64,000 nt of DNA from Gnetum montanum (Eukaryota > Plantae > Gnetophyta), in assembly GCA_015680685.1 (NCBI GenBank), contig MNCI01002305.1, forward strand, positions 1 through 64,000, read 5' to 3'. Under the pieces are notes generated by a model that saw nothing but the letters and a program-made list of their open reading frames with translations, did not search any database and was not told the DNA's origin. The position numbers and the translations under genes are program-made. Shown in pieces: positions 32,368-64,000 of this stretch. The number at the start of each line of letters is the position of its first letter. Positions within the stretch are counted from its first letter, which is position 1.

Positions 32368-34462
32368 CTGAGCTATTAGTTCTTTTATTATTGCACTATA
32401 TAATGTGGGAATCAATCAAATATAGAACTACAGGTTATGTGGGGTTAAGTTGCTAGAATTATGATGAAGAATGTTTAACATTAAGTCATTCTTAACAGAA
32501 GAAATTAATATCTTAATACACAATATTACTGCAAAAATTTCATTATAATAATATCATTCAACAACTTGAATTTTATATTCTTTGAAAGGTATATGGGTAT
32601 TTATCTATATATTTATTTCTCTATATTATCTATATCTCCTTTTCTATTCTTCTTTTATAGTTCTGCTTCAATCTGGTGTAAAAATTACTTCAATTAATGG
32701 TTTCAATAACTTTTGGCTAATGGTTATGACCTAGGTGGGAGTCACAGCTAGGTTGTAGCTCCCTACCTAAAGAAGAATAATCAAGTCAATCAATTGTTGC
32801 AAGGGACTGTGATTAGTAGTCATAGTCAACCATTTTCAATGGTCAAGTATTCAAATCCTAACCAATTAGGTTGAAAGATCCTTTATGATTATGATAGTGG
32901 TATGAGTCATTGAAACTCATACTAATGAATTTCAGTCTTTTGTTAAAAAATACATTGTGAGTAGTTGTGAATTGCATCAAGAAGAAACTTTGTACTATGA
33001 GCTCATGAGAGTCACATGAGTAGGAAATACCTTACCAAACTCAATTTCAACTTCCAATGCTTCCATCATTTTTGTTCGAAGCTAACTCCACCTGTTTATC
33101 AATTCTTTCTCTTTTGAAAATTGACTCTTGACAATCATAGGATAGACATTGTTATTGTGGTGAGTTCTAAACTCATCAAGAATGAAATCCTAAGTTTATA
33201 CCTTGAACTATGGGCAACTATGGATCACATGAGCTCACAACTATTTGCCCAAGTCTAAAAATGAAGGAACCAACTAGAAAGGACCATCAATTCATATCCC
33301 AAAATAGCTCCTCAACTAGCTCTTCATCATCCTAATAAAAGAGAGTAGAAGAATATAAATAAATTAATGAAAATATAATAAATAACAAAGCACATCATAA
33401 AATCAATCCCCTTTATCATAACACTTCAAAACATATAGAAAGGAAGAAGGGAAAAGAAGAAGTGAGGAAACAAAATGCTCAAGTTGGAGGAGCTAAGCCC
33501 TCCCCTAAAGGGGATGTAGAAGCCTTTGCTAAAGGAGGAGGTTAAGATGCATCATTTCTTGCCTTCTTACTCATGTAATCCTATTTTATTACCTTATCAT
33601 TTACTTGGTTTGTAGGGCTAGATGGTCCAACCTAATTTGCATCAATGATCTGGAATCCCATGGGAGAAAAATTTGGATTCACCAATTCACCAACCTCCTG
33701 GTGAATAACTATGTTGTGTAGCTCTCTCATCATACAAAAAAAAAATGATGTCCCAAGATCTTGACCTTGGTTACCAACTAATACTACCTTCTCCCAAGTT
33801 GATTGCATTGAGCATGAAGATGCATCTCCATCTCATTATAATGTCTAATGAGACTTTATTGTAGGACATCCAATCAAGTCATGAATCAAGCTTCAACATC
33901 CACCAAAGCCTAGTTAGCACCTATCATGCCTTGCTACTACTGTGGCTATTGTATATCAGCATAATGGGTCTTCTAAGAGGCCTTGTTCCCATTTCCAAGT
34001 ACACATGGATTAGTAATCCACCTAATCTTCGCATACCATGTCCTAGACAATTACTAACTGTAGAAGGCACATCCCAGATTCAAAAATTGGTCCTCATTTA
34101 ATGCAACAATCACCTTGATGAGTAGGATAGGTGGCCAAATCTAAAAATGTTGATACAATGTTGATCACTAATGTGAAAGGAACCCCATTAGTGCCTTGGA
34201 TGACTAACTTCATCTTAGAAAAAATGATTAATAGATAATTGAGAGTGCAAGGAACCTCCAAGTCTCTCATTACTAACATGCCTAAGAACATGACATGTGA
34301 AATGAGAGTTGCCTAAAATGTTCATCATCATTTCTCTTACAAGAACCATAGTTTCTGTGAAAAGATTCTTATAGGGCCATCTTGTCTCATCCATCATCAT
34401 GCCAGCAAATAGCTTAGCCAACTAAGTCCACCTATCTGACAATGTTAATACAAAGTGCCATT

Positions 34463-35869
34463 TGAAACACCATAAAAATTTCGAGGCCTCGACGGTTCGG
34501 AAAAATCTAGCAACTCAGGTGAGAAGTCGCAACAAGGTGTGGCACAGTACAAATGAACTTCAGGAGATAGAACAAAATGATGGGTGCAGGACGGCAAGCC
34601 TTCCACTTTGTGAGTTTTCTATGTTTCAAAATCTCAACATTTAGCACATTACACTGCATTATGCAACATAGCGTAACGCCGCATTATGTAGCGTAATATC
34701 AAAGACAGTCTACCATAGCATCAAAAATGGCAAACATTCAAGACTCCGACAACCCAGCAAAAATATCAAGGCTTAAGCAACGATCTGCAGCATGCTGCGC
34801 ATTTTAGTGGATTTTATTCCCTAGTTAAGGGGGCCCATTACACTATGTTACGTAGTGCAGCATAATAAAACCCCAAAAGGGATTGATCAGAAACAGAGGA
34901 AGCACAACAACAATACTTCAACTTTTGCAGTTTTGTTATTTTGCGCTAAATCACGCTATGATGCGTAATGTAGTGTGACGCAGTGTAATATAAGTAACGA
35001 TAGTACAATTTAGACATCAGTAATTCATACGCCATAATACGCTCTCTAGCGTATTGTAGCATAATCAAAGGATAGTTTGTTGACAAAGCTCAAACAAGAG
35101 TAGTTTACAATGCACTACATAGCATAGCACCACAAGATACAACGACAACACATCAAGTCAATGGCATCTTGTAAGTTCAGGACACATGTCATCTAAACCA
35201 TGTTTTCCTCCTTACCCTAACCTTATAAGTGCTCCAGTTGACGAAGATCAAAGGGTTGGAAAAAATTTTCTCTTTCAAGGTTGGCAACAGAGCAAAAAGA
35301 GGATCAGCGATCATGAGAACATCAGAGGTGATTGGCAAGAACTCTTGATCAAAAACAATCGGCTACCAGATATTCTCCCCCAGGTCTAACTTACTTGTGT
35401 GTAGATTGGCTAGAACAAGGTAGATTGACCCTCTCTTGTTTCATCTTTAGAAAACTTTCTTGCTGTTGGCATGTGCTTCATCCAAACCGAAGCTCGCCTG
35501 TAATCATTGTATCAAACATATTGTGTTAATAAATTAAATCCCAGATCTTATGATCGTATTCCCTACAAATCTGATTCCTTGCATCCTATTTATACATATT
35601 TGGCAATCACATCTAAATCGTTTACATCGTTTTCAATTGTTTTCGGGATTAACAATATTGCATCGCCTTATAAAGAATCTTCATTTTGCCATCAAATTAT
35701 TGCAAAAATTTTATTGATTAAGTAAGTCCTTGTCTAATTGACAAGACCATTCAGGGCATCTCAAATTCATTTTTTTCTCCAGCACCGCCCTCGCACAGAT
35801 TCGAGGTTAGAACTATGTACATGGGCTTTCATTCGGTATTTCCAGCGACCGACATTTTCTATTGTTATA
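34463..35869 (+). repeat. 5' LTR (1407 bp)
   Basis: TGAAACACC...GTTATA (CA->TA). Aligns end to end with 50788-52193. TATA-like CCTTATAAG at ~35221. Confidence 0.95.
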
Positions 35870-35875
35870 GTTTTT

Positions 35876-35892
35876 TGGCGCTAGAAGGAGGG
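35876..35892 (+). promoter_or_regulatory. Primer-binding site complementary to the plant tRNA-Asn 3' end
   Basis: TGGCGCTAGAAGGAGGG, 6 nt after the LTR. Complementary to ..CCCUCCUUCUAGCG-CCA (tRNA sequence recalled from memory). Confidence 0.85.
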
Positions 35893-36125
35893 CCTTCGTA
35901 GCCGATCTACATTTTACAGGTAGTCTTGTAAGTTGTCTGTACCCATTGTCAATCAACGTAAACGTAATACCTCCGAGGTTGTTTACGAAATTGTGAGGTG
36001 CAGATCGGTCGCTTCGATGATTCCTTTGGAATCCTACAAGATAGAAAGCCTCGATTATTGTCTCAGGTCATCTTTGTCCTTCTTATCTTTACCTTTATCA
36101 TCATTATTTTCGAATCGCATAGAAA

Positions 36126-39100
36126 ATGGTTACATCAACCACAGCTGTTGACACTACCAACCTAGAAAACCCTTGGACCATGCAAGTTACACTTCCGGTG
36201 GTCGAGCCGCCAACTAGTCTGATGCGATCACGCCGCTCCTTCAGGCTTCAAAATAAAGAGCCTAAGGAACATGCTCATTGCAAGGAACACTACAATTTCC
36301 TCTACGCTAAGCTAGCGGCAAACCTTCCTATGTATCCGCAAGTACTTGAGGAAAAACAAGAGTACGAGTTCATGTACAACAACAGGAAGGAATGTTTTCC
36401 TTCACTGAATGCCACTGTGCCCCTGACAGATCAACAAAAGTGGATCCTAGATCAAATGTTGATGTTAAATACATTTCTAGAACAACTACAGGTCTTGTTC
36501 AGTGATGAAATGCTTCACAACGAGCAAGACGATCTAGAATCTCACTCTGAAGGGGGCAGTCATGCTGATTTCACCATGGCCCCTCCCTCCACGACGTCTT
36601 GCGTAAATCCATTGTTCATGGTCACCATGCCTTTGACATTATCCAATACCAATCGAGTCCCGCATTCACCGTGATTATATTTTCTTTCTCCGACTATGCT
36701 TTCGGGTGAAGGTCCCTCACAGATCATTCCCCAGTAGGTGCAATTACCTAATCCGCCCCATCGTACACCTATGCCTATGTCACCACATGTGCACGCGATA
36801 CCTACGTCCCAATTACCTACAACACCAACTTTGCTTTTGACTCACATGACAGAGCCTACCACCATAGCATGGTGGGCTCCCAACATGTCTCTTGTTGCCC
36901 ATCCTACGCAAATGCACCACCATCCCCATCATCAGAGTCAAGTCCCACAAGTGCTAAACCCAGCTACAGGATTGTTGCTCATGCCCCCGGTTACACAAAC
37001 AACATACCCAATGGCATAGCCTATGGTGTTTGCTCCATTTGCACCAACCACCGAATGGTGGATGCCACAAGCAACACTACCTACAGGGACTATCCCAATG
37101 GCACCAACCATCGGCCAAGCCGCTGCCTCTGTTCTGCCACCTGGTATGGCTCCACCCACAGTTCCACAAACGACCTTGTCATCTACAGGTTTGGATCAAG
37201 CCTTCCAGCTCATTCAGACCCTTATAGAGGAGGTCAAGCATCTCAAGGCTCCTGGTTCTGATGTGGTGCAAGTCATGGATTTCTACCATGACGATCCTAG
37301 TAGTCTAGCAATCCCAGTCCTATCATTGCCACCTAGGATGCCCCTTCCCCATTTCAGAAAATACAATGGGGAAGGTGATCCCAATGCCCACCTCATCACT
37401 TTTATGTGAGAGTCCTTATTGCTGCAACAATGGTCGCATACTATAATCAATTTCTTTGCTATGTCCTTAATAGGTAAAGCTTTGGATTGGTATCGAGCAC
37501 TTCCACGTGCTTCCATTTCAACTTTGGAAGAGCTATTAACCTAGTTTGTGACTTGTTTCAAATACAACCTGAAGCCAGAAGTCACACTGGACCAGCTCAT
37601 GGGAGTCAAACAAGACCCTCTTGAGCCGGTTCAAAAGTTGATACAGCGTTAGAGCACCACCTTAAATGAGATCTGCAAACCCATCGCAGAGGCCCATCTA
37701 TTGGCAATCTTCAAGGGAGCGATCAACAAGTTAATCAAGTCTAAGATGTATTACCTTGCTCCCCATTCCCTCAGCCAAGCCTTTGCTCAGACTAAGAGCA
37801 TCCAAGATGTGGCGGAGGCTAGTAAAGATTTGACATATGTGGTCTACAAAAATTCCCATAGCAAGGATAAGGATACAGGAAAAGCCACAACAACAACAGT
37901 GGCAACCGTTGCTGAAGGGGCCATGAAGAAAAACAACAATAACAAAAAAACAACTATGGAGCCAGCCGAACTGACAACTAGCTCAAATGGTGCCAATCAA
38001 GAAGCTCCTCCCACCCTCGAAGCATTTCCACCACTGAGGCCAAAATTTGAGCGTAAAGATCACTCAAATTACACAACTCTACCTATGAAGCCTTTAGAAC
38101 TTCTGAAGCAATTATTGGAAACCGGTCACATCCGACACAAGGTGGTGTCCAAGGAGGCTCTAAAATGTCACAGGTGCCACTATGAGTTACTCAAGAATCC
38201 CTCCTTGGCCCAACCTAATGAACTGCCCATTCCCAAGAACTTTAAGCTAGACTGATTCTATGACTACCATCAATTGTGTGGTCATGACACGGATTATTGC
38301 TAGGCGTTGAAAGATGGCATTCAACGTATGATTAATTAGGGTGACCTGATCATAGATAGTAGTAGTCCAGCTCACCTAGAAAACCAAGTCATGCATGTGT
38401 ACCAAGACCCGTTAAATGCAAACAACGCAGGGTACACAATTAACATGGTAGGAGCAGAGAGCGATAATTGGGCACAACCAAAACAACCTTTCGTGTTGCG
38501 AACACATCCTTGCTCTCCCCGAACAACGGATCCATCAGCATCGACAAGTGATGCTCCAAGGCAACCTTTTATCATTAGAGCCCCTTCTTAGACAACTTCT
38601 CGATAGCCCCCTGTTGGTAAAGCCATAGCTTAGCCCGTGCCTACGCCCAATGCTCCCTTTGTCATCAGGGTGCCAAAACCATAAACTCTCCATCCCATGT
38701 AGGGGAAAACCTCCAAGTCAATCTGCTGATCCCAACTTAATGAAAAAGGATAAGCAGGTATGACAGCTGGTATGGCCAAGGACCATCTTACGCTGGGGTT
38801 TCCCAAGCCTAAACCCCTCTCTTCTGTACCCTTGGCCCCATTTCCTAAAAATGGTAAAGTGATGCAAACACAACCATCTACTCCTAGCCAAAAGAAACAC
38901 AGCCCTCGACCGAATGTCACTCCTCCATGAGAAATTTGTCTCCTAGGGCGAATGGAAGAGGAAAAGGGTGACAACTATCCAGATCGTGGGTGGAATCTCT
39001 TCAACACATTTATGCAAGTCAAATAGGCTCTAAAACAAAAAAATACAACATTAAGCCTTTATGACTTACTCATGACATCATAGAAACATCGTGAAGCTAT

Positions 39101-39891
39101 GGGTTCGTATGCTGATGTCCATACCCATGGACGAAAGCCTGCCAACGGATGAAGAAGTGATTCATTTTGTTATGCTTTCCCCCGCAGCTGAGAAAACCAG
39201 GCATTCCTTGTTGACCTTTCATGAAGAATCCATTAAGGATGACCCAAAGAAAGGTCAGGTGACAATGGCACCCATTTTCATCACCATCTGGGTTGGCCAA
39301 CACCAAGTTCAGAGGATGCATGTGGATGATGGGACAGCCGCTAATGTCATCCCATATCCCATAGTGGATAAGCTAGGCTTGATTGATTAGATCAATCCTA
39401 CCATGATGTCATGTTTAAAGTCATTCAACGGGGCATGAGTGCAAGTCAAAGGCATAGTGCACATCAACTTTGTGTCAGGGGATTAGTTCCCCATAGACGC
39501 AACGTTTATTATCGTTGAAGAGATGCTTGGTTTCAACTTGATCTTGGGGAGGTCTTGGTTGGCTCAACTAAGGGCAGTTTCTTCACCTATCCATCAGAAG
39601 ATCCATCTACCCTACGCAGGAGGAGAAGTGGTCATCCACGGTGATGAAATAACCCCTCAGGCTGTTAACAACATAGAAACGGAACAGGGGTCAGAAATCA
39701 AAATGTTCGAAGATTAGCCCCCTATCTGAATACTCGAACAAGCTGAAATAGTGGCAGATGACAACCTAACTTGGGCCAAACTACCATTCCCAGAGGAAGA
39801 GTGTGATGTGAAGGAAAAGGGTGGTAAATCCCCTCATCTTTACACATCACCAAAAATAAAAGCGATCAAGAAACAATTACAGGGCTAGCCA
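36126..39891 (+). pseudogene. gag + protease (exon 1 of the polyprotein) with nonsense mutations and one +1 frameshift near 39100
   Basis: ORFs 36126, 36738, 37023, 37701 and 38391 share one frame. PHFRKYNGEGDPNAHL..LIGKALDWY (retrotrans_gag), Tat-type knuckle YDYHQLCGHDTDYC.ALK (~38259-38312), SLYDLLMTS.KHREAM, protease HVDDGTAANVI and FNLILGRSWL..AVSSPIHQKI. Confidence 0.9.
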
Positions 39892-40195
39892 GTAAGCTTG
39901 GTCATCTGGTTCTCTTATTATAATAGGATCAACACCCTTTTTGTTGCCCTACGTGTGCATACCCTATTTTACAACTCACCGCCGTACAATTTATGCGTAT
40001 TTTCTTTCATCATGCTATCCCAGCTTTGCTGTACAAACACTCATCTTGTTTTACGCTTACGCTTATTCCTTGCAGTCCCACCAGCTATTCTCATTTACAC
40101 TTATGTTTTTACGCTCCCACTAGTTATCTTTATCATCCTTAAATTTATCTACAACTAGTCATGTATACTTTGCACCTAAAATATACACAACCTGC

Positions 40196-40560
40196 AATGG
40201 CCTTAAACTATTCAGGGCCCAAAATGGCCTAAAACTAATTGCAGCCTGCCATGACTTAAAATTGATGATTTAATGTTATTTATCCTTTCACACACCATAT
40301 ATGCCCATGGCCCAAAATGGCCTAAAACTACCCATGGCCTGAAATGGCCTAAAACTACCCATGGCCCAAAATAGCCTAAAACTAATTGCAGCCTGCCAAG
40401 GCTTAAAACTGGCAACTTGATGTTATTTCTTTTCTTCACACATATGTCTAGGGCCCAAAATGGCCTAAAACTATACATGGACCGAAATGGCCTATAACTA
40501 CCTATTTAAATCACAGTTTACACTTCAACTAATCAAAGGCCCGAAATGGCCTAAAACTAG
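40196..40560 (+). repeat. Tandem/dispersed repeat GGCCCAAAATGGCCTAAAACTA
   Basis: About 8 copies, three of them in direct tandem at ~40307-40384. Confidence 0.9.
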
Positions 40561-40777
40561 TTATCGTATTTACGCTTTGCACCGGAATTATCTAGTAGCC
40601 CACAATGACTTTATACCAGTAACTTCATTTATGCTACATGCCTAAAATTATCTGCCATTTCTTATAGCATCAAAACCTACTTATTTACGCTTTGCATAAA
40701 ATGAAAATAGCAAAAAAAAATTAACTTAGACCAAATTTGCATCAAAGTGTCAAAGAAAAATATTGTCTTTTCCATCA

Positions 40778-43700
40778 TTAAAAAAATGAACTGTGGCTAG
40801 TATAGCCACACTAAGCATCTCCTTTGTCCCCATTATCACCCGTATCCCTCAGCTTAATCTGCACTCTAAGAAAATCATCCTCGTAGGGGCCATCTTTTTT
40901 AGGCGACATTTCTTTGTGAAGGTGTCCCTCCCTGTTAGGCTCTTCTATATGAATTTGTTTGCCACGGTGTTGATTATCATCATTACACTTAGTCCCCTAC
41001 AAACCCTCTTCATGAGGACCGCCATCCACGTTAGGTTCATCTCGTTGAAGAACCTCCTCAGGTCATTCCTACAATTAACATAACACACATATTGACATCG
41101 TGATCAAAAATAGGTATGATAAAAGGCATAGTAAAATAAAAACTCACCTGTGACGGTCTTGCATTGGTAGCAAACGGAATTTTTTCTAAGCCAATCCATA
41201 GACGTTGCATAACTTCATCCTCGGTAAGCTCAGAACAAACCCCGTCTCCTAGATTAGCTCTGGCCTTGATCTTCCCTTTCTCCACAGGAGTCCATCGGGG
41301 TGGTTCGGGGAAGAAGGAAGGGATGGTTGTCTCCCCTCCAGGAAGAGTCATTTCCCTTTTTGGAGAGGCACTCACCGTCACTTGCTCCTGGAACTTTTCA
41401 AATGCACTGGAAGCACCAATAACATCGAGGAATAGTCAAAGAGACTAAGCCTTGATGGAAGAGTCCCTGTAATATTGAGGATAGGCAGTGCATTCTAGCT
41501 TGTAGACATATTTTTGGTCTTTCTGCGTCTACCCCCACTCTTGCACACTTGCGCAAAAGTCCTTCCAGTCTTGATTTTTTTGAGCTAGGAGATCCATTTG
41601 CATCTGCTACTCAACTAGCTCATGGCTGGTTTGGACATTATTTCGGATGATCATCCAATAATGGGCATAGTCCATAATAGCCATCCACTAGTCCTCATTA
41701 CCTATCCCCTAATCTTGCAAGAATTCATTCTGCAACCTCAAATCCCCCACTTCATCACCTAGAGCCACCCTCTCTTTCTCCAACCTTTGCAATCTCTTCC
41801 AAAGGTCTTCGTTTATACTTTGACATTTACACAAGGAGCAGGTCGAGCATACCACACATTTACGCATCTCTTCATAAATGCTACGTGGCACGACGGTCAC
41901 TTCCGTTGAGGGTTTAGTGGTGTCTAGATTAATAGGCTCCAACGGATCCCATCTGAGTTGAGCTCCTAATAACATAAAATAGTGGTTAGGCATAATTAGG
42001 TAACATAATACCATGATGGGGTAACTTCTGTGTAATGATCATGGTGTACCCACTTCAGGATTGATTTGCTCTAAGCAACTGATCATATCTTGGACGACCC
42101 ACTCCATAAAGACGAATTTATCAGGAAATTTGCCCTAGGATCGAGTCGCCACTATTGAAAAATGTACATCCTGGTTACCTATTACATAGGACAAGTTCCA
42201 TGTGAGGACACGATTGAAACATTACAATGGCCAATATAACCTTCAGAAGCAATGGTCTAGAGTTGAGTATGCCATAAAAGTTAGCCTCACAGAGTCACTG
42301 ATCATTTACCTCTTCTTGTCTGGGCCAAAAGGACTTCGGCATATTTCACTGTTGCTCCCTTCTTACATGCAGGAACCTATGCACTGCTAGTCGTGTTGAC
42401 TGTAGCCTCTTCTTCCAAGGCCGGGGCCTCCTCCTCGCACCACAAAATCATAGCCCCTGTTTCAGGGGTTAACCTTTCCATGACCTTCTCCTTCGCTGTC
42501 ACACAATGTTCTCAGTTAACATAGAATTATGCTTTAGTTCATTAAATTATGACATAATATTGTCTATATCCAGCATAACTATAATTATTATCACATTTTT
42601 TTGCTTACCTGCTGGAGGATTAATACTCCAACACTTGACCTGCATCTTCTACCTCGTACCACTTGTTGGCTCCTCGGACTCCTCGATCAAACGAGGCTTC
42701 TTGCAGGGCACCGATGAGTCCACTATCTCATTTTCCAGGCACTTCCCCCTTGATGCATCACTAGTATAGGAAGGGAGCACCCCACCCACACTGTCTTGAC
42801 CCCACGTTCGAGGTGCCACCATGTTTTTAGTCATTACTGACAACAACTCCATGATTCCTTTAGGATGGTCCTATGACCAGACAGTGCCAAAAATATGGGA
42901 AATCCATGGTTTAGAGATCTGGCTACAGTCTTACTACACCCAAACTCCATTTCTTTGAACTACTAGAAACTCAGCAAAGTGCTGGAAGCAAGCTATAAAA
43001 AAGGCAAAATGCACATTGAAATGGGATTCAAGCTTCTTGTGAAGCTTGACCATTTCAACGCATAGGACTTCGGCAAAATAGCTGGCCCAATTGAATTGTG
43101 TCCCTTCGCCCATGACCTCTCGCATAATGCGAGCTTACTTTATGGTGAGAAACCTCCCTTGGGAGAGTGTCTTGGGGAAGGCCTGGGCTCGGAAAAGGGG
43201 GTAAATGGTGTTGGCCACCTCCAACTCAATCCCTTCGGTAGGAATTCCTTTGGCCTCCTTCCTAACCCCTAGCCACATCTCTACCTCTTCCTAGTACTTG
43301 GCACTCCTCTTCAACTTTTTCTCTATAGGAAATCCATCAGAGGGAACCCTGAAGAGATTGACGAACAACTAAGCATCAATGTCAAAATTTACGTGCACGT
43401 TACGCATGCGTATGCAGAGACACTCAACTTTTTAACTAAAGGAGTTGACTAAGGTTAACATTTCACCCACAGTAACATTAGGGGTTATGGCCAAGAATAG
43501 GTCCATTAGTCCATCCTTCCAAAGGTTATTGGTCAAAACAACAGGGGCCGCTCTATGGCCAAGCTAGTGTTGTGCCTCCTTTATGTCACCCTAGTGGAAA
43601 AAGATATTGCTTGCATCGTGACTAGAAGCCATGATCGTAATCTCCCATGATTCCCTGACTGCACACATAAAACAATAGCTGAGCCAAGATAGCAAAAAAT

Positions 43701-45234
43701 AAAACAAGAAAACTTCACACATCATCGCTAGCTAATAACATTAACACAATTCATCATCGTAACGAAGTTTACCAAGTCTGAATGCCAAAGGAAATGGATG
43801 GATTTTCCTTCGCATGTCGGCGACAGTGAGGGGAGGATCCAAGGTCTATTCCTTATCCAACCATCTGAGATTTTTTCATCTAGCAAAAAAGTTAGCATTG
43901 CAAGTTGGGTATTATGGAATTTCAAATGCTAGTTGTTCCATGACAGTGACCCGTACATTACTTATAGCAGTAAATTCACCTATAGCCCTTTCGGTCAATG
44001 ACAAAGTATCATTATCGCCTAGGAGACTTCTGTCATTGATTTAGAATCTACATCATAGAAAATGGGAAAATTCTTTACACTCAATGTAAATTTAAACAGT
44101 AGTTAGCATGTTAACACACATCGAACAACACAAATTTAGGTTCTTACCCGCCGGTGTAATACACGGTACTAGGCGGGTTTTGGAAATAAGTTGTGAGGTG
44201 ACAGGCCACGAATAGAGTATTGTAGGAGTGATAGCAGTTGAATCTGGGCACCTTCCAGATCCAAATCAAATACCTCAAACCTTTGGCACTCTATTCACAG
44301 TCTTGTACCCATGCAGTCTCAATCCTGTTGTCTGTCAGGAATCCCAAGACGTCGTGCATTGAACCAACCAGTAGCGTCTCCAAAATAGTGGTAGCTACAT
44401 CTCTTGGTAGATTGGACCAGACGATTACGCTGTAGTTACAAAGTAGAAACTGTAGGAACCCCCGCACACCCCTCTGGAACCACATCACCTCCCCCTTTAT
44501 ACGAGCATGAGAAGGAGGAACATTGGCCGCGGGGACAAGCATGCAGCAGAGAACGCCCACGATGTCCAAAATGATTAGGACAGGCTTTAGCATAATACTG
44601 TATAGTAAAAAAAAACATACTACCATTAGGAAAAACATTTAGACATGAACCTTTTCCATGCTAAATTAGGATTTTTCCAATTCCCTGAAAACTACAGGTT
44701 CCACTTGAAACGCATGGCCAGAATCTCCCAAACCCTTGCAACAGCTCAAGGTTTTTCTTTGACAACGGAGATGGAAATGAAACTACGTATCATTCTAGCG
44801 TAACATGTAACCATTACGGGAATAAAGGAAAAAAGAACAAAACCCTGATTATACTATCCACCAACTGTAACACCTAGTTTTTTTTCGATTATACATTATG
44901 TTTGCTCAGTCTTACTTAATGTTACCTAAACCCTCGTAACGATATGAGGTTTATCTCCAACAGCGAAGATGAGGGTAATATCGCAAACCACAATAGCTCA
45001 TCCCGCGTAAATAGATACTAACCCTCAACGTAACAAACGCATTCAGGAAAATAACAAACAACCACGATGCTACAACAAATATAACAATGGTGCAAAAGGC
45101 TAGATGACGACTTACCGGTTCAGTGGAGTAACTTCCCAAGCCTCGAATCTGTCCTGCGAAGCCTGCTGCAAACTCTCCTGCACTTCATCAATCCTTGCCA
45201 GTTTAGCATTCTTCCCCTGGACCTTAGGTGCCAT
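40778..45234 (-). pseudogene. Antisense 8-exon cargo gene (~1105 aa): FCP1/NIF-like HAD domain + PMD-like domain + Cys cluster/coiled coil + acidic tail
   Basis: Exons 45234-45116, 44597-44148, 44047-43773, 43658-42609, 42495-42310, 42178-42050, 41965-41148, 41068-40778 (3318 nt, divisible by 3). All introns are GT-AG (518, 100, 114, 113, 131, 84, 79 nt) with matching phases. Starts MAPKVQGKNAKLAR. Internal stops only, no frameshifts. The 84-nt intron and the terminal stop are the least certain parts. Confidence 0.8.
43930..44597 (-). pseudogene. FCP1-homology/NIF (HAD) phosphatase-like domain within the cargo gene (exons 2-3)
   Basis: KPVLIILDIVGVL (motif I), FQRGVRGFLQFLLCNYSVIVWSN (cf. 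KRP..FL.FC...F.V.VWSS), AWVQDC, YHSYNTLFVAC..NPPST (cf. Y..NTLLIDD..NPPNT) and SNVR (cf. DDVR). Confidence 0.7.
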
Positions 45235-45260
45235 AGTTGCAATCGAATGAATTCTCATAG

Positions 45261-45330
45261 AACCCTAAACCCTAAATCCAAATTTGCGATATCTGTAACC
45301 TACTTCAAGTATGAACCATCGGTTTATAAA
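45261..45330 (-). promoter_or_regulatory. Putative promoter/5' UTR of the antisense gene (TATA + telo-box)
   Basis: TTTATAAA at 45323-45330, about 90 nt upstream of the ATG at 45234. AACCCTAAACCCTAAA (telo-box AAACCCTA) at 45261-45276. Confidence 0.55.
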
Positions 45331-45777
45331 CAAAATTCTTGAAACTAACTTCTCTTTCTGCCCGATCAATGCAGAACTTCCCGAAACGCTGGTGTCAGTA
45401 TGACATGAAACATGAAGATCAGGGCATTAATTTCATAGATATCATGTACATTGCAGTCTGAAATGATCCAAACTAATACATTTATCATCTCATAATCTGG
45501 CCGCATTAACTACGATTCGTACAGAGATTCAAATTTCACGACACACTAGACACACCACATTGCACCTTCCATTTTATTTCATACACCAGCATCTAGGAAG
45601 CCAAGCTTGTCATTGTTTTATAGACCAGGCATATTTGTAATGGTCCACTAAGACCTTAAACTATAAGCCTCCTTAATATGCAGCCCTAACGCAACGAAAA
45701 CAAAAACAAACTCTTATCACTCAACAGATTGGTCGAAAAATGATGTAACAACTTCCTTTTTTTTTGCGTTTTTGCAG

Positions 45778-47410
45778 GGTGATTCACAAATGGACGCAGA
45801 TTTATCTACACCATTAGCCTTAACAGGCCCATATGGGGAGACCATTAGAAAGCATAATTACACTCTAATAGAAATAGATCCTTCCCTTTGTAACACAACT
45901 ATAGCAACATCAGAAATATCCCCAGATTGGCTAAAACATCTAGCCCAAACGCTAGACTTGGAGGCTGGCGATGTGATTGACGACCCTCTCGACGAGGGCC
46001 CTATGGTTATGCACAAAGGTGAAAATAAAACTCTCAGGGTTAGTTCCCTCCTAGATCGACAGACACAGAGTGACATAATGCAGGTGCTCCAAAACAATGC
46101 TGCTGTATTTGCGTGGTCATACGAAGACATGCCGGGATTAGACCCGAGATTAATACAGCATAACATAATTTTAGACCCACGCATCAAAACAATTAGACCG
46201 AAAGCACGAAAGATTAAGCCAAAAATCACATTAGCAATGCGTAATGAAATCACCAAGCTATATCAAGCTGGTTTCATTCGCACAATTGATTACTCAGATT
46301 GGGTGTCCAACATCGTAGTTGTTACTAAGAAAACGGGAGGCATACGCATCTGCATAGACTTCTGGGATCTGAACAAAGCTATGATTAAGGACAATTTCCC
46401 ACTACCAAGTATCAACCAACTGATCAACACAATAGCTGGCCACATGCTTCTATCCTTTATGGATGATTTCTCAATCAAATTCGTATTAATCTAGAGCATC
46501 AATTGACCATAATGTTCATGATGCCCTGGGGGACCTTTTGTTACACTATGATGTCTTTCGGGCTAAAAAATGTTGGGGCAATGTATCAACGAGACATGAA
46601 ATACATCTTTAGTGACTATCTTTTAGGGAGATTGAATGACTATGTAGATGACATAGCTGTCAAGTCTATAAAGTCTGAAGATCATTCAGAGGACCTAGAG
46701 TTAGTCCTTAAACGATGTCTTAAGCATGACTTACGGCTCAACCCAAAGAAGTGCATATTTGGAGTCAAAACCAGACACATGTTAGGGTTTATGATATCAG
46801 AAACTAGCATCCGAGTTGACCCCGAAAAATTTAAAGCCATCATCAATTTAACGCCACCTACAAACCTCAAAGAACTACGTGGGTTGCAAGGCAAACTACA
46901 GTTCATCAGGTGAATCATTTCGACATTAATAGACAAATTACATTCTATGCAAAAACTTCTTAAGAAGGATGTTAATTTTGAATGGACCAATGACTTCCAA
47001 CGTGCATTTGACGACTTAAAAAAGGAGCTACAACATTTACCAATGATTTTCTCACCACAAAGGGATCAACCTTTCTACATCTATCTAGCTAACTCAGATG
47101 TGTCTATAGTTGCGTTACTTTGCCAAAAAAGGAACGATGGGTCAGAATCCCTATCTACTACCTCTGTCATGCTCTATTTGCATATGAAACAAGGTACAAT
47201 GAAGTGGAACATAATTGTTTGATGTTAGTTTTCGCACTTAAAAAATGTAGCCTTTATCTTTTCCGCAGTCAGGTCAACATAATTTGTAAAAGCAACGTTC
47301 TGCGGGCTATCTCAAACAACTTATATGAGAGTAGTAGGATAGCTCGTTGGAAGGCTATCATAGCCGAATTTGATTTACATTATGTTGGCCAATCGTCCAC
47401 CAAAGATTAG
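45778..47410 (+). pseudogene. Reverse transcriptase and native RNase H (exon 2 of the polyprotein)
   Basis: VFAWSYEDMPGLDP..WVSNIVVVTKKTGGIRICIDFWDLNKA..KDNFPLP, small deletion/frameshift at ~46470, YVDDIAVKS (~46641), LNPKKCIFGV, FYIYLANSD and RIARWKAIIAEFDL. Confidence 0.95.
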
Positions 47411-47519
47411 GGTATAGCTAACCAACTAGCGACATCGCCCACTAAAGATCAAGCTACGATAGAGCTAGAATTCCCAGATGAACATGTACATAGTATAGGC
47501 CCTATGTCGGTAAGCCTCG

Positions 47520-47900
47520 AAGCGACGTTATATTTTGATGGAGCTTCAACTACTAGAGGTGGCAGTGCTAGCGTCATCATTACACTTACCCCTGAGGATG
47601 TGTGCCCATTGGCTTATTGCCTGGCCTTCCCTTGTATGAACAACATGGTAGAGTATGAGGGGCTCCTCAGGGGATTGTTGACAACCAGAGAGCTCAACGT
47701 TCAACACCTGATGATCCGAGGTAATTCGATGCTCATCATCAATCAAATCACAGAAATCTATGCCTGCAAAGCTATGCACCTACATCCATACTGCATTATG
47801 GCTAAAGATCTCCTGAAAAAATTTGTGATAATCGATGCCCAACACGTGCCACGCAATGAAAACGTTGTTGCCGATGCACTAGCAACACTAGCACTAAACA
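47520..47900 (+). pseudogene. Additional archaeal-type RNase H (aRH)
   Basis: LYFDGAS..GGSASVII..CMNNMVEYEGLLRGL..IRGNSMLIINQI..HVPRNENVVADALA. Position between RH and INT is as in Ogre/Retand Tat elements. Confidence 0.9.
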
Positions 47901-47989
47901 TGCCACCACACTTGTTTGTCACTTGGCCCACTTTAATGATAGAATGTACAGAGCCTATCATTCAAGTGGTGTAGATTTCTTTATTTAAC

Positions 47990-49248
47990 ATGGGAGGAAC
48001 ACCAGAATGGTATGACAACATTAAAACTTACCTTTTTCATGGCAAACCACCACATGAGCTAACACATCCACAAAATGATGCAGTGCACAAGCGTGCCAGG
48101 AAATATGTCATCATTGGAGACAGTACTCTCTATAGATGCTCTTTTGATGGGGTATTGCTCACCTACGTCAATAATGATTAAGAATGATGAATAGTTAGTG
48201 AAGTCCACAAGGGACTGTGTGGGGGACACGTAGCCCTGTGAGCCATGGTCGCTAAAATCAGACGCGTAGGGTACCATTGGTCGTACATGAAAGAGAATGC
48301 TTTACCAAAGTTAAGACATGTGATATATGTCAGCGTTATGAAAACCTAATACACATGTCACCAACTAAGTTATACATTACCTAGATTACTTGTCCATTCC
48401 AATGATGGAGACTGGACATCATAGGTCCCATCGCGCCTAAATCTTCTGTAGGACATAGCTTCATTATCATCACCACCAAGTATTTTACAAAGTGGGTTGA
48501 AGCTATCCCCCTATGGAATATTACATCTCAATAGGTTTACCATTTCATCTTAGATAATATTGTAACTAGATTTGGGCTCCCTATGACTATTGTGACTGAC
48601 AACGGACCATAATTTAGTAGCACATAAACCAAATCTTTTTGCGATAATCTTGGTATTAAGCAATCTTTTTCTTCACCTTATTACCCATAGGCAAATGGTC
48701 AAGCACAAGCGATAAACAAGGTAATTATCAATCTACTTAAGAAGATGCTCAGCAATAACAAAAAACGATGGCATGAAAAAATCCTCTACGTGCTATGGGC
48801 ATATCGTACAATGTGTAGAATAGCCACAGAAAGGACACCCTACAGCCTGGTCTACGGATCCGAAGTAGTTTTGCCCTTAGAATCATAGCTTCCCTCATTG
48901 CAGATGGTCCTATCCATGGTTATAAATGAGAATTAACACAATGAGTCTAGAATCATGGATTTAGACTCAGTGGAGGAGAAATGCATCCAGACGCTCGACA
49001 CCATTGAAAGATATCAGGATAAACAGAGACAAAAGCATTGCGACAACCTACATCAACGATCGATCAAGAAAGGAGATTTAGTTCTCAAGGCCATTTGTGA
49101 ACTAGTAGGCAATTTCTCTGCAAACTGGGAAGGCCCTTTCCTGGTCATCGGCACATACAGCAATGGAGCATTCAAGTTAGCAGATATCGATGACAACGAG
49201 TTATCAAATCTAGTAAATCATCTGTATTTAAAGCGGTATTACATTTGA
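47990..49248 (+). pseudogene. Integrase
   Basis: EVHKGLCGGH..CDICQ zinc domain, GLDIIGPI, IVTDNG, PYYP.ANGQAQ, VLWAYRT and NWEGPF..HLYLKRYYI stop. No chromodomain. Confidence 0.92.
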
Positions 49249-49280
49249 ACATCAATTAGGCTAAAACACAAGGTAAAAAA

Positions 49281-49612
49281 CATCTGCTATGACATAAAAC
49301 TGACAAAGTTGTACACGTCTGCTACGATGTAAAACTAGCACTTCTTGTATGCATCCGCCAAGACGCTAAACTGGCGAAGCTTTCGACCGTCCGCCATGAT
49401 GTGAAACTGGTGAGGTAAGCATACATCTGCTGAGACGCTAAACCAACATAGACTTATCCCTAGGTCAGAACATAAAACTAATACCCACAACACGGTCTGC
49501 TGGGACCATAAACTAGCTCTTCCACTGTCTACTATGACGTAAAACTAATAGGTTCCAGTCTGCCCAGACGTTAAACCGGGAGCACAGCCTGCTGAGGCTT
49601 AAAACCAGCAAC
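49281..49612 (+). repeat. 3' UTR repeat array: ~22-bp conserved core with variable spacers
   Basis: About 10 units of ~TCTGCTANGACGTAAAACTRG separated by different short spacers; period roughly 29-37 nt. Confidence 0.85.
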
Positions 49613-50774
49613 AACAATTAACCAAGACTCAAAAATGGAATCTGTTGAGCATTCCATGAAGCAAGTGAGCATGGTCATTCTTGCACAGCATCCCTACCAG
49701 AGGAAACGGGTAAGGCGTTGGATCAGACGCAACGCTGCTACCCCGCTGACATCCTACTGATTCTTCGGACATGCCTTAAAGCATACTACTGACCCCTCAG
49801 AGATGTTTCTATGATAGCCACTCTGTAGCTGCAGCTCCAGGGATCAAATTTTCTACTTGGGGCCCCGAAGCGACTATGGTCATCCATAGTCTCAATGGCC
49901 TCCATCCATCACCATCACCAAACTCTGGCCTAGCAGATTCATCTAACTTGTTCTTTGCCCAATCATTTTGGCAACATGAATCTGGCTATCAACGGTGGCT
50001 GCATGAACCACAACACCAACATTGGGATGCTTTCTCCCTATTATGGTCCCTGTTTCATGGCCTATGCTCTCCTTTTTCTTTAGATTGTGCTTGTCTCAAC
50101 AACTTCCCTCCTTAGTGATTAGGACGATTGCTTCTGCGCTCTTCTCTGTGATATGTTTTGCAGGTTCCTTGCTACGACAGCGTTGATTGGGAATGCATTC
50201 ATTATAAGGCAAGGTTTCATGGCATCCTGAAGTGGTTGCTTAGACTAGCTTTCCCATTTAGGAGTGCAAACCATACCTATCCCTCCATCAGATGCATTAC
50301 TTCGTTTTCTCCTCCCTTTGTCCTCATGATCATCTTTACCCCCTGTTTTGCTTGTACAAAGCGTGAACATTTAAGCAAAATCTTTTCCATCTTCATGTTA
50401 AAAAAAAAAGGGCAAAGCTTGGTAAAATGGATGTAAAAAAACTCATCCAGGCCACACAGGCATAACAAAACTCGTCCATGTAAGCCCTTTATATACAGTA
50501 TGATAGTGTAACCTCTTGCAAATACATTCGTGGAAGGATGCTATGACTCGTTCACAAAAGTTTCATGTTCACGTGCTTGAGTCTTCCATGAACCTGTCTT
50601 TCCTCACATATGTAAAATCCCCCCTATGCTTTCCTCCCTACCCTACCTTTGCACTTCCAAGTTTTGATAGAGCGACATCTGAGCAATCTCCAACTGTCAT
50701 TGTTGGTGCCTTTACCTCTTTGGTGTTTCATATTCTTTGTCGACATCTTTCAGGCAAGCCCTCTAAAAGTCCAC

Positions 50775-50787
50775 AAAGAGGGGCCAT
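50775..50787 (+). promoter_or_regulatory. Polypurine tract
   Basis: AAAGAGGGGCCAT immediately before the 3' LTR. Confidence 0.85.
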
Positions 50788-52193
50788 TAAAACACCATAA
50801 AAATTTTGAGGCCTCGACGGTTCGGCAAAATCTAGCGACTCAGGTTAGGAGTTGCGACAAGGCATGACACAATATAGATGAACTTCAGGAGATAGAACAA
50901 AACGATGGGTGCAGGACGGCAAGCCTTCTACTTTGCAAGTTTTCTATGTTTCAAAATCTCAATATTTAGCACATTATGCTGCATTAAACAACATAGCATA
51001 ATGCTGCATTATGCAGCGTAATATCAAAGACAGTCTATCATAGCATCAAAAATGGCAAACATTCAAGACTCCAGCAACCCAGCAAAAATCTCAAGGCTTA
51101 AGCAATGATCTGCAACATGCTGTGCATTTTAGCAGATTTTCTCCCCTGGTTAAGGGGGCCCATTACGCTACGTTACACAGTGTGGCATAATAAAATCTTG
51201 AAAGGGATTGATTAGAAATAGAGGAAGCACGGCAACAATACTTCAACTTTTGCAGTTTCGTTATTTTACACTGAATCATGCTATGATGCATAATGTAGTG
51301 TGATGCAGCGTAATACAAGTAACGATAGTACAATTCAGACATCAGTAATTCATACGTCATAATACACTCTCTAGTGTATTATAGCATAATCAAAGGACAT
51401 TTTGTTGCCAAAGCTCAAACAAGAGTAGTTTACAATGCGCTACACAGCATAGCGTCACAAGCTCCAATGAAAATACATCAAGTCAATGGCATCTTGTAAG
51501 TTCAAGACACGCGTCAGCTAAACCATGTTTTCCTCTTGATCCTAACCTTATAAATGCTCCAATTGAACAAGACCAAAGGGATGGCAAAAATATTCTCTTT
51601 CAAGGTTGGAAAGAGAGCAAAAAGAGGATCAGTGATTGTGACAACATCGGAGGTGATTGGCAAGAACTCTTGATCAGAAACAATTGGCTACTAGATATTT
51701 TCCCTTGGGTCTGACTTCCTTGCATCCAGATTGGCTAGAACAAGGTAGATTGACCCTTGCTTGTTTCATCTTTAGATAACTTTCTTGCTGTTGGCATATG
51801 CTTCGTCCAAAATGAAGCCCACCTATAATCATTATATCAAACATATTCTGTTAATAAATTAAATCCCAGATCTTATGATCGTATTCCCTACAAATCTAAT
51901 TCCTTGCATCCTATTTATAAAATATGGCAATCACATCTAAATCGTTTACATTGTTTTCAATTATTTTTAGGATTAACAATATTGCATCGCCTTATAAAGA
52001 ATCTTCATTTTGCCATCAAATTATTGCAAAAATTTTATTGATTAAGTAAGTCCCTGTCTGATTGACAAGACCGTTCAAGGCACCTTGGATTCGTTTCTTT
52101 CTCCAACACCACCCTCGCATAGATCCAAGGTTAGAACTATGTACATGGACTTTCGTTCGGTATTTCTAGCAATCGATGTTTTTCATCATTACA
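50788..52193 (+). repeat. 3' LTR (1406 bp)
   Basis: TAAAACACC (TG->TA)...CATTACA. Colinear with the 5' LTR. Confidence 0.95.
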
Positions 52194-52198
52194 CTATT

Positions 52199-53944
52199 TG
52201 TTGGTCCCACCTGCACCTCAAGTACCTTAGCAATAAGGGCGTCATTGATGTCATAGGGCTTGGTGCCAACCTAGAAAGTCCATTACATAGGTGAAGTCCT
52301 TTAAAATGTCAATTAGGACTATTGAGCCTCTTACTCATAGAATATATCATCTCCTATTAAGATAAACTCTAGGTTGTACACTATCAAAGTGGTTGCAAGT
52401 AGTGAATTCAATAGTTCCATGAGGGGCTTGGAGTTCCTAAGTTCCCTCAATGACATCATAGAGAACTTTGTCTCTCAATGCTCATGCTTCAAATTCTCCA
52501 TACACTCCCTATGAGTGCATTCTTTCTCCTCCTCTTAAGCATGTCTCTATGCTATTGAATCTGCAATTACCAAAGACTATCCCTGAGTATGCCTCCTGTT
52601 ATGCTAAGATACATAAGAAGTTTCTTATTGCAAAAAACATTAGTACACAATCAATAATAGTCTAATGCATAAATGAAAAACATGAATATAATTCAATAAA
52701 TAAATAAAGTACCATAATATCAAAAATAAACATAATTACAAACAACTACAAAGATCTACACCAATATTTCTAAAATCTTAACAATGTTGGTACCCCCAAT
52801 GAAGTCTACATTTTCCTCAATGTACATGACTAGTGCAAAGATGGAAAATAAAAACTAAAATTAAAATTAAGTATGAAGATTTTGCATAACATAAAGAGAA
52901 ATCTATTAACAATCATTAATGGATTAGCTAGTATACCATGAATTTAGAGTACAAAGGATGCAAATGAAATTACTTGATGTTATTGCATACTAATAAGTAA
53001 TTTTTAAAAGAAATTAATGTTCCATAGATCTATCTTGGATAAAACCTAATCCAAGCTTAATAGGGGATTACTTACGAACAAGGATAGTTATACTAAAAAA
53101 AACATAACACCCATACCAATAAAATTCAAATTATCATGGCTCATCTAATATATCCTAGAGTTAACTTAATACTGAAGATATCTTTATGTTACTTTCTACT
53201 TATAAGATATAGTGTATATAATAAGAAAACTTCTAATAGCTCAAAAACAACAAAAACCTAGTTGTATGCAAAATTCAAAATCAAAGTAACATAGAAATTA
53301 CTTCAAATGTTGAATGGAAAGTGCTAGAATGCCAAAGAAGACACAAATAGCCCAAACTTCATTAATAAGTCATTTAATCACCTCTAGAAAAACACTGATG
53401 TCCTAAAATTGCTAGAAATAGTGTAGAATAGGAAGTCTAACAAGAAAAACATATTAAAGTAAGAGATTTAAGGCCTACCTTAGGTATTTTATGGAGGGAA
53501 GAAGGCTTGGAGGTTAGATCTAATAACTATGCACATGATGAAAGCTCAATTCAACTCTTGGATGTGTCCTATGACATTCTATGATGAAAAGTGATTTTTG
53601 GTTTTTTGGGATGCACTTTTATTTCTTGCATCTTTTAATTAGGTTGCAACCTACTACAAGTTGTAACTTGTCATAACACAACAATGAAAAATTTAATAAA
53701 TTTGAAAGTTGTAATCAACTATGAGTTACACCTTGTGGAATCTCTAAAACTAATGGTTGCACCTAGCCACCCTATTCTACAATCTAAGAAATTAACATTA
53801 CAAAGTAATGCACTACAAGTTATAGGCATTTGCATTGTTCGAAACCTGAAAAACATGAATTTCAAAATGTGTTAAATTATGAGTTGCACTTATCATAATA
53901 ATAAATTAATTGGAATTAGACATTGAGATGTGAGGGGGGTTACA
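52199..53944 (-). mobile_element. Old minus-strand LTR-element remnant, probable target of the Tat insertion (may continue at ~33000-34457)
   Basis: Minus strand begins TGTAACCCCCCTCAC (LTR-like start at 53944). Faint gag-like residues at 52300-52530. Heavily decayed. Confidence 0.35.
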
Positions 53945-54672: not shown

Positions 54673-55916
54673 TGAAATATCACAAATAAAATCCATGTTG
54701 GAACCCATAACCAAAATTATTTGTAATTTGGTGAAAAATAATGCCAAACACAATTACATTATGTTCCCCAAAATTTGGCATTGTAAGCTTTATCACTAGG
54801 AAACTTTTGTAGTTTATATTCTATAGATTTTACATATCCTACCTTATGAAGGCTATAAAATGCTTCATAAGCTATGAATGTCTCGTCTTGTAGGTGAAAA
54901 AGGCTATAGTTTTTATATATCTAGGCTTACGAAGGTTGCAGATGCCTAGAAAACCACCAAATTTGGCATTTATTAGCCTATATGTTGGCCATGGTAGTTT
55001 TTACACTAGAAAACCTATAACAATAGTGCATAAAATTTAGGTTTTTAGTTTTTATGTTGGGACACCTGCCCAACCAGCATATAAAATTTGTCCTTTTAAT
55101 TTTTATGTTGGGCCTTAGATTTTTATGTTGAGCAAAATATGGAGCTAGTGTAGAAAACATAAAAATATCCAATTTTGCTAAATATGCTACCAAGAGATTC
55201 CCTACACACACCAAAATGTTTTAGCAATCTATCAACAAGCATGATAGAATCAACAACAAATTAGGACATCAATAAATTATTTAAATGCAAAATTACTTCA
55301 TTGAAAGGACTTATGGATAATTCATCCATTCACCAAAATTAAGACTTTTGAAGTAGTGAAGGTAGAGAAAAACTTCCATAATACCAATACTTTTGGAAAT
55401 TTTCATTCAGGCTAATATCAAGACTTTTAGAGCATTGCAGATCAACCAAGAATCTATACTATTCTTCCACATACAACACAATCCCATTAATAGAGAGACC
55501 AATGATGAGCTTCAAGTGTAGAATATATGGGACCATCGAGAGAAAATCTGAATGCAAAACATACCCTATCGACTGAGTTAGGTTCTAAACATTCTCCCTT
55601 TGGCATTTTATGCATTCAAAGCATAAACTTTTGTATTATCTGAACTTCTATTTTGTGAACCTTCAGTATTTCAATAAAATAAAAGCTTTTAGTGTACTAG
55701 TTCATTATGACTTTATTCCCTATTTCTTTGCACTTAAATTTGTATCTACAATTACATTTTATTCATTCACATCAGTAAGAAATTGTAAGTCCTTAGGTGA
55801 TCGATAAGACCATCTAGGATGCTTCAAATCCTTTCCTTGAGGTCCATAGATCTGAAGCTAAATTGTCTCATCTTGAAATTTTTGGCCTTTCAGCATCAAA
55901 TTTTTTAGGCATTATA
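54673..55916 (+). repeat. 5' LTR of the gag-only element
   Basis: TGAAATATC...ATTATA. Aligns with 62492-63786 (e.g. TTTATGCATTCAAAGCATAAA, ATCTGAAGCTAAA). Confidence 0.85.
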
Positions 55917-55921
55917 ATTTT

Positions 55922-55939
55922 TGATGCTAGAAGGAGGGG
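55922..55939 (+). promoter_or_regulatory. Degenerate tRNA-Asn PBS
   Basis: TGATGCTAGAAGGAGGGG versus TGGCGCTAGAAGGAGGG at 35876. Confidence 0.8.
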
Positions 55940-56999
55940 CTGTGCTCAACTTCTTCATAAAACCCATGGCAAAAATATTTTCCATTAGTGTTGGCCTTAG
56001 CTTTGAACTTGCAACCACAAAAATTTTTTTAGGTTTTTCCCAAAACCAATGCTATACTTGCAATCAATTTAGGCCTTGTTTAAGGTTAAAATTGGTATTG
56101 GGTTTTTCCCAATACCTAGTGTATTACCTGAAATTAGTTTAGCATATTTAAATTTTTTCTATTAGTGTTGTACTTTCCTAAAGCCCAGCATATAAACTAT
56201 AGTAAGTTTGGCTTTATTTTCTATTTCTCCATCGAATGATGGGTCTAAAACCTAACATATAAAGTTCAATAAGTGTGGCCATCTTTTTATTTTTCTATCA
56301 AGTGCTTGACTTTTACAATGCCAACATATAGCCTTCAACAAAACTTGCACCTTAACATATAACCTATAACTCATTTCATCTTTTAATTTTGTAAAAGCTT
56401 GGTTTTAGGTTTTTCTAGAACACAACATATAAATTGCATTGTAAGCTTTGGTTGGGTGGTCATCTGAAACCCAACATATAACCATCAACCTTTTCAAATA
56501 TTTTCTTTGCATTAAATATTCTCTAACCATAACTTGCAGTGCTGCCACCATTCCCTGCAATGTAAAACAAAAGAAGATTAATCTTTAATTTTTTCTAGTG
56601 TAGTACACTACTATAGTTCCTTGTGTCTTAATCCATGAAAAAGTTAACTTTTAATTTTTTTCTAGTATAGTGCATAGCACTGTAATCCCTATTTTAACCA
56701 TTTTCACTTTGATATTTTTTCAACCATGTTTACACTAAAAATCATTTTTATGCTGAAAACCATTTTTATGGTGAAAGCTATTTTATACACTAAGCTTATA
56801 TGTTGTGAATCATATAAGTTGGAAAGCTTTTATGCTAAGAATCCCATATGTTGAGCCTCTCATACACTAAGACTACCTCATATGCTAAGGCTCTCACAAA
56901 ACCTTACACAATCTAAGAGACTTAGCAAGTCATTCAGTTTAATACCTTGTTTATGTCTTCCCACCGTTCAACAGTATTACCACATAACATAACACAAAT

Positions 57000-63786: not shown

Positions 63787-64000
63787 ATCTTTAAATAATA
63801 GAAATTTTGCTTTTGTTACAGGTTCAATCCCTATGCAAGTCATTTCTCATGAGTACCCCTTGGGATCATGTTTGATATCTCATGATGTCTCTTATCCCAA
63901 GTCCTTAATTAATACCCAAGCCTCAAGTTTGTCACGAAATAACATATTGAGCTAACAATATACCTAGTATAAAGAAAGAGAATTGACTCACTTTTCTAAC

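Follow-up and report, generated by a model that had tools for sequence, protein, structure and literature searches.

A predicted eight-exon antisense gene within the putative protease-reverse transcriptase intron of a decayed Tat/Ogre-type retrotransposon of Gnetum montanum

We present the analysis of a 64,000-nt stretch of the gnetophyte Gnetum montanum (contig MNCI01002305.1 of assembly GCA_015680685.1, positions 1 to 64,000 of the forward strand; hereafter, the window), which harbors a dead copy of what, by its domain order and a break between the protease and the reverse transcriptase (RT), is a Tat/Ogre-type Ty3/gypsy long terminal repeat (LTR) retrotransposon. The predicted protease-RT intron of this element, 5.9 kb long, appears to owe its size to an oppositely oriented accessory gene that was probably still intact when the copy inserted; we assign this reading a probability of roughly 0.6. 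As far as can be judged from the sequence, the antisense gene is a real feature, with exons 2, 4 and 7 being the only ones supported individually. Element and antisense gene alike are pseudogenes in this copy.

The original prediction had joined eight minus-strand exons spanning 45234-40778, separated by seven GT-AG introns of phases 2,2,1,1,1,1,0, into a frame of 3318 nt (1106 codons) closed by a TAA at 40780-40778. Reading its junction numbers as exon ends and locating the other junctions by scanning, we reproduced this model exactly. The antisense gene was translated and searched as separate exons or pieces. Its components are as follows:

45234-45116, minus strand: exon 1; no stops; donor CCG/GTAAGT at 45115
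44597-44148, minus strand: exon 2; one stop; putative NIF/FCP1-like (HAD) domain
44047-43773, minus strand: exon 3; four stops in 91 codons; the NIF-like domain would have its C terminus here
43658-42609, minus strand: exon 4; 349 codons with 10 stops; includes the part earlier called PMD-like
42495-42310, minus strand: exon 5; one stop; acidic stretch; codon log-likelihood ratio (LLR, defined below) with z 2.8
42178-42050, minus strand: exon 6; one stop
41965-41148, minus strand: exon 7; 272 codons with six stops; stop-free codon LLR with z 3.1
41068-40778, minus strand: exon 8; three internal stops; terminal TAA at 40780-40778
45321-45328, minus strand: TATA-like box 94 nt upstream of the modelled ATG; a single motif match that could be chance

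The donors of introns 1 to 7 read GTAAGT, GTAAGA, GTAAAC, GTAAGC, GTAAAT, GTACAC and GTGAGT, four of the seven having the form GTRAG. In introns 1, 2, 3, 5 and 7, T makes up 35-49% of the minus strand, a U-rich composition exemplified by intron 7 (GTGAGT..TTGTAG; 79 nt, 49% T), and the GC content of the six introns other than intron 6 is 0.26-0.39, as against 0.40-0.52 in the exons. Intron 6 (42049-41966, 84 nt) is dispensable because it preserves the frame and its removal takes out just one stop. An alternative in-frame ATG is found at 45258, eight codons upstream of the modelled one, and the TATA-like box is a possible core promoter of the antisense gene.

The entire antisense gene lies inside a second, sense-strand feature, which contains a repeat cluster in addition:

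39892-45777, plus strand: putative sense intron between protease and RT; 5886 nt, phase 0, GTAAGC...TTTTTGCAG
40176-40560, no strand assigned: tandem repeat cluster of 27-nt and 147-nt units, within the sense intron and 3' of the antisense gene

Both ends of this segment (hereafter, the cassette) carry strong splice signals, with CCA/GTAAGC at the donor (39892) and a long T-rich tract followed by GCAG/GG at the acceptor (45777). The coding frames on either side both have a coordinate modulo 3 of 1, and the length of the segment is divisible by three (5886 = 3 x 1962); hence, its splicing would join the protease to the RT in frame at phase 0. We accordingly recognize a protease-RT break of the Ogre type with consensus splice signals at both ends, in the form of a predicted intron, and the two-layer nesting envisaged in the original prediction holds at the sequence level with respect to the sense donor and acceptor, the flanking frames and the containment of the antisense gene. 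Tandem arrays are frequent in Tat/Ogre elements; the one in the sense intron is built of a 27-nt unit with the consensus CCCATGGCCCAAAATGGCCTAAAACTA, arranged in a 147-nt higher-order tandem cluster (40176-40560). Over its initial 260 nt (39900-40160), the sense intron is T/C-rich and of low complexity on the plus strand, and displays an 86-codon open frame without a family match, which is probably a compositional effect.

The antisense model was compared with 1000 dinucleotide shuffles, in which the exon boundaries were kept and each exon was allowed whichever of its three frames had the fewest stops. It shows 26 stops versus 43.4 +/- 4.4 in the shuffles, none of which (0/1000) had 26 or fewer; exon by exon, stop depletion stands out only in exon 2 (p 0.012), exon 4 (p 0.032) and exon 7 (p 0.01). 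It had originally been argued that the stops are explicable by single transitions, but this is uninformative, as any stop codon is one transition removed from CAA, CAG, CGA or TGG. The extent of decay matches that of gag-pol, as measured by a decay index (stops divided by the sum of stops and CAA, CAG, CGA and TGG codons), which is 0.25 in the antisense model and 0.19 in gag-pol (Fisher p 0.29), compared with 0.47-0.48 in the off-frames. Such a value is consistent with the gene having still been intact at insertion and having decayed over the same period as gag-pol.

Codon usage provides evidence regarding the coding strand. We computed a codon LLR that contrasts coding with reverse-complement codon usage and was trained on gag and pol of the element, with stop codons and their complements omitted; an initial version that included stop codons was rejected as being confounded by the choice of stop-poor frames, and the stop-free one was used instead. 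Per codon it is +0.064 in the frames of the minus-strand model (z 3.7), -0.03 in both off-frames, and +0.017 in the best plus-strand frames (z 1.0), with cross-validation between gag and pol giving 0.11-0.13. An automatic builder blind to the earlier model recovered the junctions at 45116, 44148, 42609 and 42178, and six plus-strand pieces returned no Pfam match. Taken together, the codon LLR, the orientation of the splice signals and the NIF signal described next point to the minus strand.

Two partly independent signals weakly suggest that exon 2 encodes a NIF/FCP1-like domain. In a protein atlas, 27 of 30 neighbors of an exon-2 piece are NIF clusters (0.90-0.91, with 191 of 256 features shared), and in Pfam the piece matches the NIF profile (PF03031), with residues 38-75 falling on profile positions 37-74. 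This agreement in register suggests that the NIF-like domain would begin with exon 2. By eye, there is a K-K-P-R stretch at the end of exon 4, and in exon 7 a Cys-rich part precedes charged, heptad-like sequence resembling a coiled coil.

Whole-window self-comparison reveals the host element as an LTR retrotransposon of about 18 kb bounded by two 1.4-kb direct repeats, with the following parts:

34457-35858, plus strand: 5' LTR; aligned core, with the true ends a few bases further out
36126-38590, plus strand: gag; decayed low-stop frame with nine in-frame stops in 821 codons
39091-39891, plus strand: protease region; D-D-G-T-A aspartic-protease motif; frame coordinate modulo 3 of 1; ends at the sense donor
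45778-46913, plus strand: reverse transcriptase; RVT_1, E 4.9e-13 on 46503-46913
46914-47407, plus strand: ribonuclease H (RNase H); RT_RNaseH_2, E 7.6e-10, and RT_RNaseH, E 5.2e-12
47504-47974, plus strand: second, archaeal-type RNase H (aRH), between RNase H and integrase; RVT_3, E 8.3e-16
47975-49248, plus strand: integrase region; decayed, with integrase-like motifs read in frame
50783-52182, plus strand: 3' LTR, preceded by a purine-rich tract

The LTRs are 88.9% identical over a 1402-nt alignment, with 127 transitions to 28 transversions and a Kimura two-parameter distance of 0.123. Transitions thus dominate the decay of the element, and on commonly used plant substitution rates its insertion would date to roughly 5-9 million years ago. 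A TGGCGC... sequence follows the 5' LTR, and about 1.5 kb separate pol from the 3' LTR. In total, gag-pol contains 33 in-frame stops in this copy. The protease-region pieces and the short pieces of the integrase region found no Pfam match, while a 44-aa gag piece (37410-37541) yielded a sub-threshold Retrotrans_gag match (E 0.026); the closest relatives of the RT in a search among 5.8 billion proteins are just 45% identical, and Rfam gave no match over 34000-52500. The aRH between RNase H and integrase is the marker of the Tat lineage; in combination with the protease-RT break, which is the hallmark of Ogre, it constitutes the Ogre/Retand arrangement of angiosperm Tat elements (PMC6317226). 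We saw no extra open reading frame (ORF) of the Ogre kind upstream of gag, the frame of which runs from 36126, with 36126-36674 lacking a Pfam match.

Several observations weigh against the reading of an enlarged intron housing an antisense accessory gene. The case is built on one decayed copy, whose antisense frame is interrupted by 26 internal stops. Exons 1, 3, 5, 6 and 8 are each indistinguishable from chance in the shuffle test; hence, the proposed exon structure is upheld as coding for the model as a whole but not in the fine structure of these five. On the plus strand, a generic model builder can assemble multiple exons into a model just as poor in stops (39 in 1509 codons). An in-frame TAG (39886-39888) lies two codons ahead of the sense donor. 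The Pfam match of exon 2 (E 0.094-0.13, 12.4-12.8 bits) falls below the 21.8-bit cut-off, and its motif I reads L-D-I-V-G-V-L, with the first Asp of the DxDx(T/V) signature kept and the second replaced. Searches of the exon pieces with phmmer against 1.84 billion representative proteins recovered just three spurious matches to repetitive proteins, and a sequence search of the PDB found nothing meaningful. Finally, five pieces of exon 4 (43-73 aa, and hence of low power) had no Pfam match at E <= 1, PMD (PF10536) included.

Some of these points are to be expected in a copy of this age or admit of a more benign interpretation. The TAG may be a product of decay, given the 33 in-frame stops that the copy has accumulated in gag-pol; were it ancestral, translation of Gag-protease would stop short of the junction, and no protease-RT fusion could result from splicing. 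A weak Pfam match is likewise expected of exon 2, as genuine gag pieces of the same copy also score below threshold. The D-I-V in place of D-x-D indicates that this copy, at least, encodes no working phosphatase, and one decayed copy cannot show motif I of the family's working gene. With regard to exon 4, the atlas neighbors of the piece 42937-43134 are unnamed plant clusters (0.94), DUF1985 (0.88) and, at rank 29, PMD (0.82). As the latter two are leads only and Pfam is blank, we do not endorse the PMD-like label that this part had received in the original prediction. A homologous-protein search with the exon-2 region 44294-44638 and the exon-4 piece 42937-43134 (both minus strand) was blank, as was a metagenome scan for relatives of the exon pieces; none of ten ORFs of the window was present in a protein collection queried by exact look-up, and the antisense and plus-strand pieces searched in Pfam gave no match to PF04195 (Transposase_28). 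A single-sequence AlphaFold model of the exon-2 piece is all-helix with a pLDDT of 60 and uninformative.

One alternative is that there is no gene at all. The model could then have arisen because a sequence poor in stops offers too many possible frames and GT-AG pairs to choose from, or its minus frames could be the shadow of something on the plus strand. The five individually unsupported exons, the dispensable intron 6 and the lack of a significant homologue among the representative proteins would all be natural under this scenario, as would the ease of constructing the rival plus-strand model. The lenient dynamic-programming gene builder permits cheap introns, by which either strand can be tiled, and the antisense frames of gag and pol are likewise stop-poor; the plus-strand model therefore implies that stop depletion shows that one strand codes, not which. 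The strand is addressed by the stop-free codon LLR, which is frame-specific on the minus strand and null for the plus-strand models, and by the plus-strand pieces without Pfam matches. Further, chance would have had to produce a stop count reached by no shuffle, a NIF signal seen by two methods and in the right register, and four GTRAG donors and U-rich introns exactly at phase-consistent positions. Hence, we consider the absence of a gene highly improbable.

Alternatively, the cassette could be private to this copy, a further mobile element (a Helitron or some other DNA transposon with gene fragments as cargo) having landed later in a short protease-RT intron. Plant genomes abound in nested insertions. 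The corresponding gap of Ogre elements is non-coding and averages 274 bp (PMC6317226), i.e. about a twentieth of the 5.9 kb found here, and Helitron ends cannot be judged from one copy without a cassette-free sister. The check for transposon ends of its own, suggested along with the original model, showed no terminal inverted repeats bounding the cassette, no internal LTRs or other long direct repeats, and no obvious target duplication at 39.9k/45.77k. Moreover, the decay of the cassette equals that of gag-pol and is not younger, which argues against a later arrival, making this explanation very unlikely. Self-BLAST and tblastn found no second copy of the cassette within the window.

Another alternative is passenger capture, wherein a host NIF/FCP1-like gene with its introns was inserted or recombined into the intron of a founder element and was thereafter copied passively, without a role and without selection. 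LTR elements are documented to capture genes, and their extra ORFs are heterogeneous and of many sources (PMC7264820, PMC6317226). The short U-rich introns and the TATA-like box are features of ordinary plant genes, while the 26 stops and the fact that a function is only proposed also sit well with a passenger. Captured genes are, however, usually present in one or a few copies (PMC7264820), and the decay of the antisense gene is no greater than that of gag-pol, so that it was probably intact at insertion. On balance, we regard passive capture as unlikely and favor the accessory gene as the better account.

Under the favored reading of an accessory gene housed in the sense intron, the antisense gene would have been intact when this copy inserted and would travel with the element, being transcribed from its own promoter within 45.25-45.77k. 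By virtue of how LTR elements replicate, its seven introns could survive retrotransposition, as they are antisense to the genomic RNA and would never be spliced from the template, and splicing of the sense intron would strip the whole cassette from the Gag-Pol mRNA. The unspliced RNA would encode Gag-protease and also serve as the template.

The individual elements of this architecture have parallels in known systems. According to the account in PMC6317226 (references 68 and 69 therein), the Ogre elements of pea and Medicago possess a spliced protease-RT intron. The present element resembles them in the order gag-protease, gap, RT, RNase H, aRH and integrase, in the GT..AG at the gap with a frame that splicing restores in Ogre and would restore here, in its large size and in its tandem repeats; it differs in having a gap of 5886 nt with a gene on the opposite strand, and no counterpart was found of the extra ORF that Ogre usually carries ahead of gag. 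Retand, Grande (gene23) and RIRE2 carry antisense additional ORFs (aORF-3R) between pol and the 3' LTR, which are continuous and mostly of the Transposase_28 type (PMC7264820, PMC11963269). These are comparable as accessory coding regions antisense to gag-pol in large Tat-lineage elements, with a promoter of their own in Grande. In contrast, the gene reported here is located in the intron of the polyprotein, has seven introns and a NIF-like domain, and shows no PF04195 match. PMD-containing extra ORFs occur in 57% of Ogre elements (PMC6317226). They too supply Ogre-like elements with an accessory protein of the transposon type, whereas in the present gene PMD is undetected by Pfam and has the aforementioned atlas lead of 0.82 as its sole trace. 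Such PMD ORFs of Ogre are located upstream of gag.

More distant parallels come from outside the plant retrotransposons. HBZ of human T-cell leukemia virus type 1 (HTLV-1) is an antisense gene of a retrovirus (PMC11963269). Like the candidate gene, it encodes a protein on the minus strand of an element that replicates by reverse transcription, and it has an antisense promoter of its own. The major HBZ isoform is spliced. Unlike the candidate gene, it belongs to a vertebrate retrovirus, is situated at the 3' end, has one intron and is not nested in a sense intron. In Arabidopsis, the MAIN/MAIL1-PP7L complex and the PMD-PP7 fusion MAIL3 combine phosphatase-type and transposon-derived domains in transposon silencing (PMC7156037). 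They furnish a functional analogy only, for a fusion of phosphatase-like and PMD-like parts of which the latter is unsupported here, and are host genes with a PPP-type fold as opposed to the HAD/NIF-type fold proposed for exon 2. Our literature searches for NIF or carboxy-terminal domain phosphatases linked with retrotransposons returned nothing relevant. Retrotransposon accessory genes as such are known; the claim that no described element has the present layout agrees with PMC6317226, PMC7264820 and PMC11963269, none of which describes it.

Other parts of the window also contain repeats. A second LTR-like pair of direct repeats (54857-55922 and 62702-63792; 75-80% identical, 7.87 kb apart) encloses a gag-like region (57049-58604), the protein of which is 47-50% identical to the gag of the main element, with no pol match there; the element at 54857-63792 may be a gag-only, non-autonomous relative. 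Direct repeats at 6470-6769 and 23491-23790 are 70% identical and 17 kb apart, and have beside them minus-strand RT-like fragments (7019-7387 and 24053-24352) about 32% identical to the RT of the main element; they may be what is left of two older gypsy-type elements, or else a duplicated block. The window has an assembly gap of 757 Ns (14834-15590) and single Ns at 3402 and 5850.

As for the function of the antisense gene, we propose with low confidence that its product might act in the nucleus as a phosphatase-like scaffold devoid of catalytic activity, linked to a domain of the type found in plant transposon proteins, and modulate host transcription or the silencing of the element. A bolder version would hold that a whole family carries a working eight-exon antisense gene in its pol intron, encoding a fusion of a dead NIF/FCP1-type phosphatase and a PMD-like part that mimics or traps the phosphatase-PMD silencing module of the host or the tail of RNA polymerase II, whereby the element would control its own transcription or escape silencing. 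We deem this extended proposal unlikely. If such a working, family-wide gene does exist, the relative amounts of Gag, Gag-Pol, the accessory protein and double-stranded RNA would be determined by how this 5.9-kb segment is spliced in the sense direction and transcribed in the antisense direction.

Accessory genes are common in plant LTR retrotransposons, and their functions are unknown. Surveys of such genes have been restricted to uninterrupted ORFs of 250 or more codons that lie on either side of gag-pol (PMC6317226); thus, a split antisense gene in the intron of the polyprotein would be missed. Should the antisense gene be family-wide and under selection, it would mean that a retroelement can keep a normal intron-bearing gene by virtue of its backward orientation, and that the Ogre-type intron is a cargo bay in addition to being a switch of the gag/pol ratio. 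Its phosphatase-like protein would then be a concrete candidate for the interplay between the element and its host.

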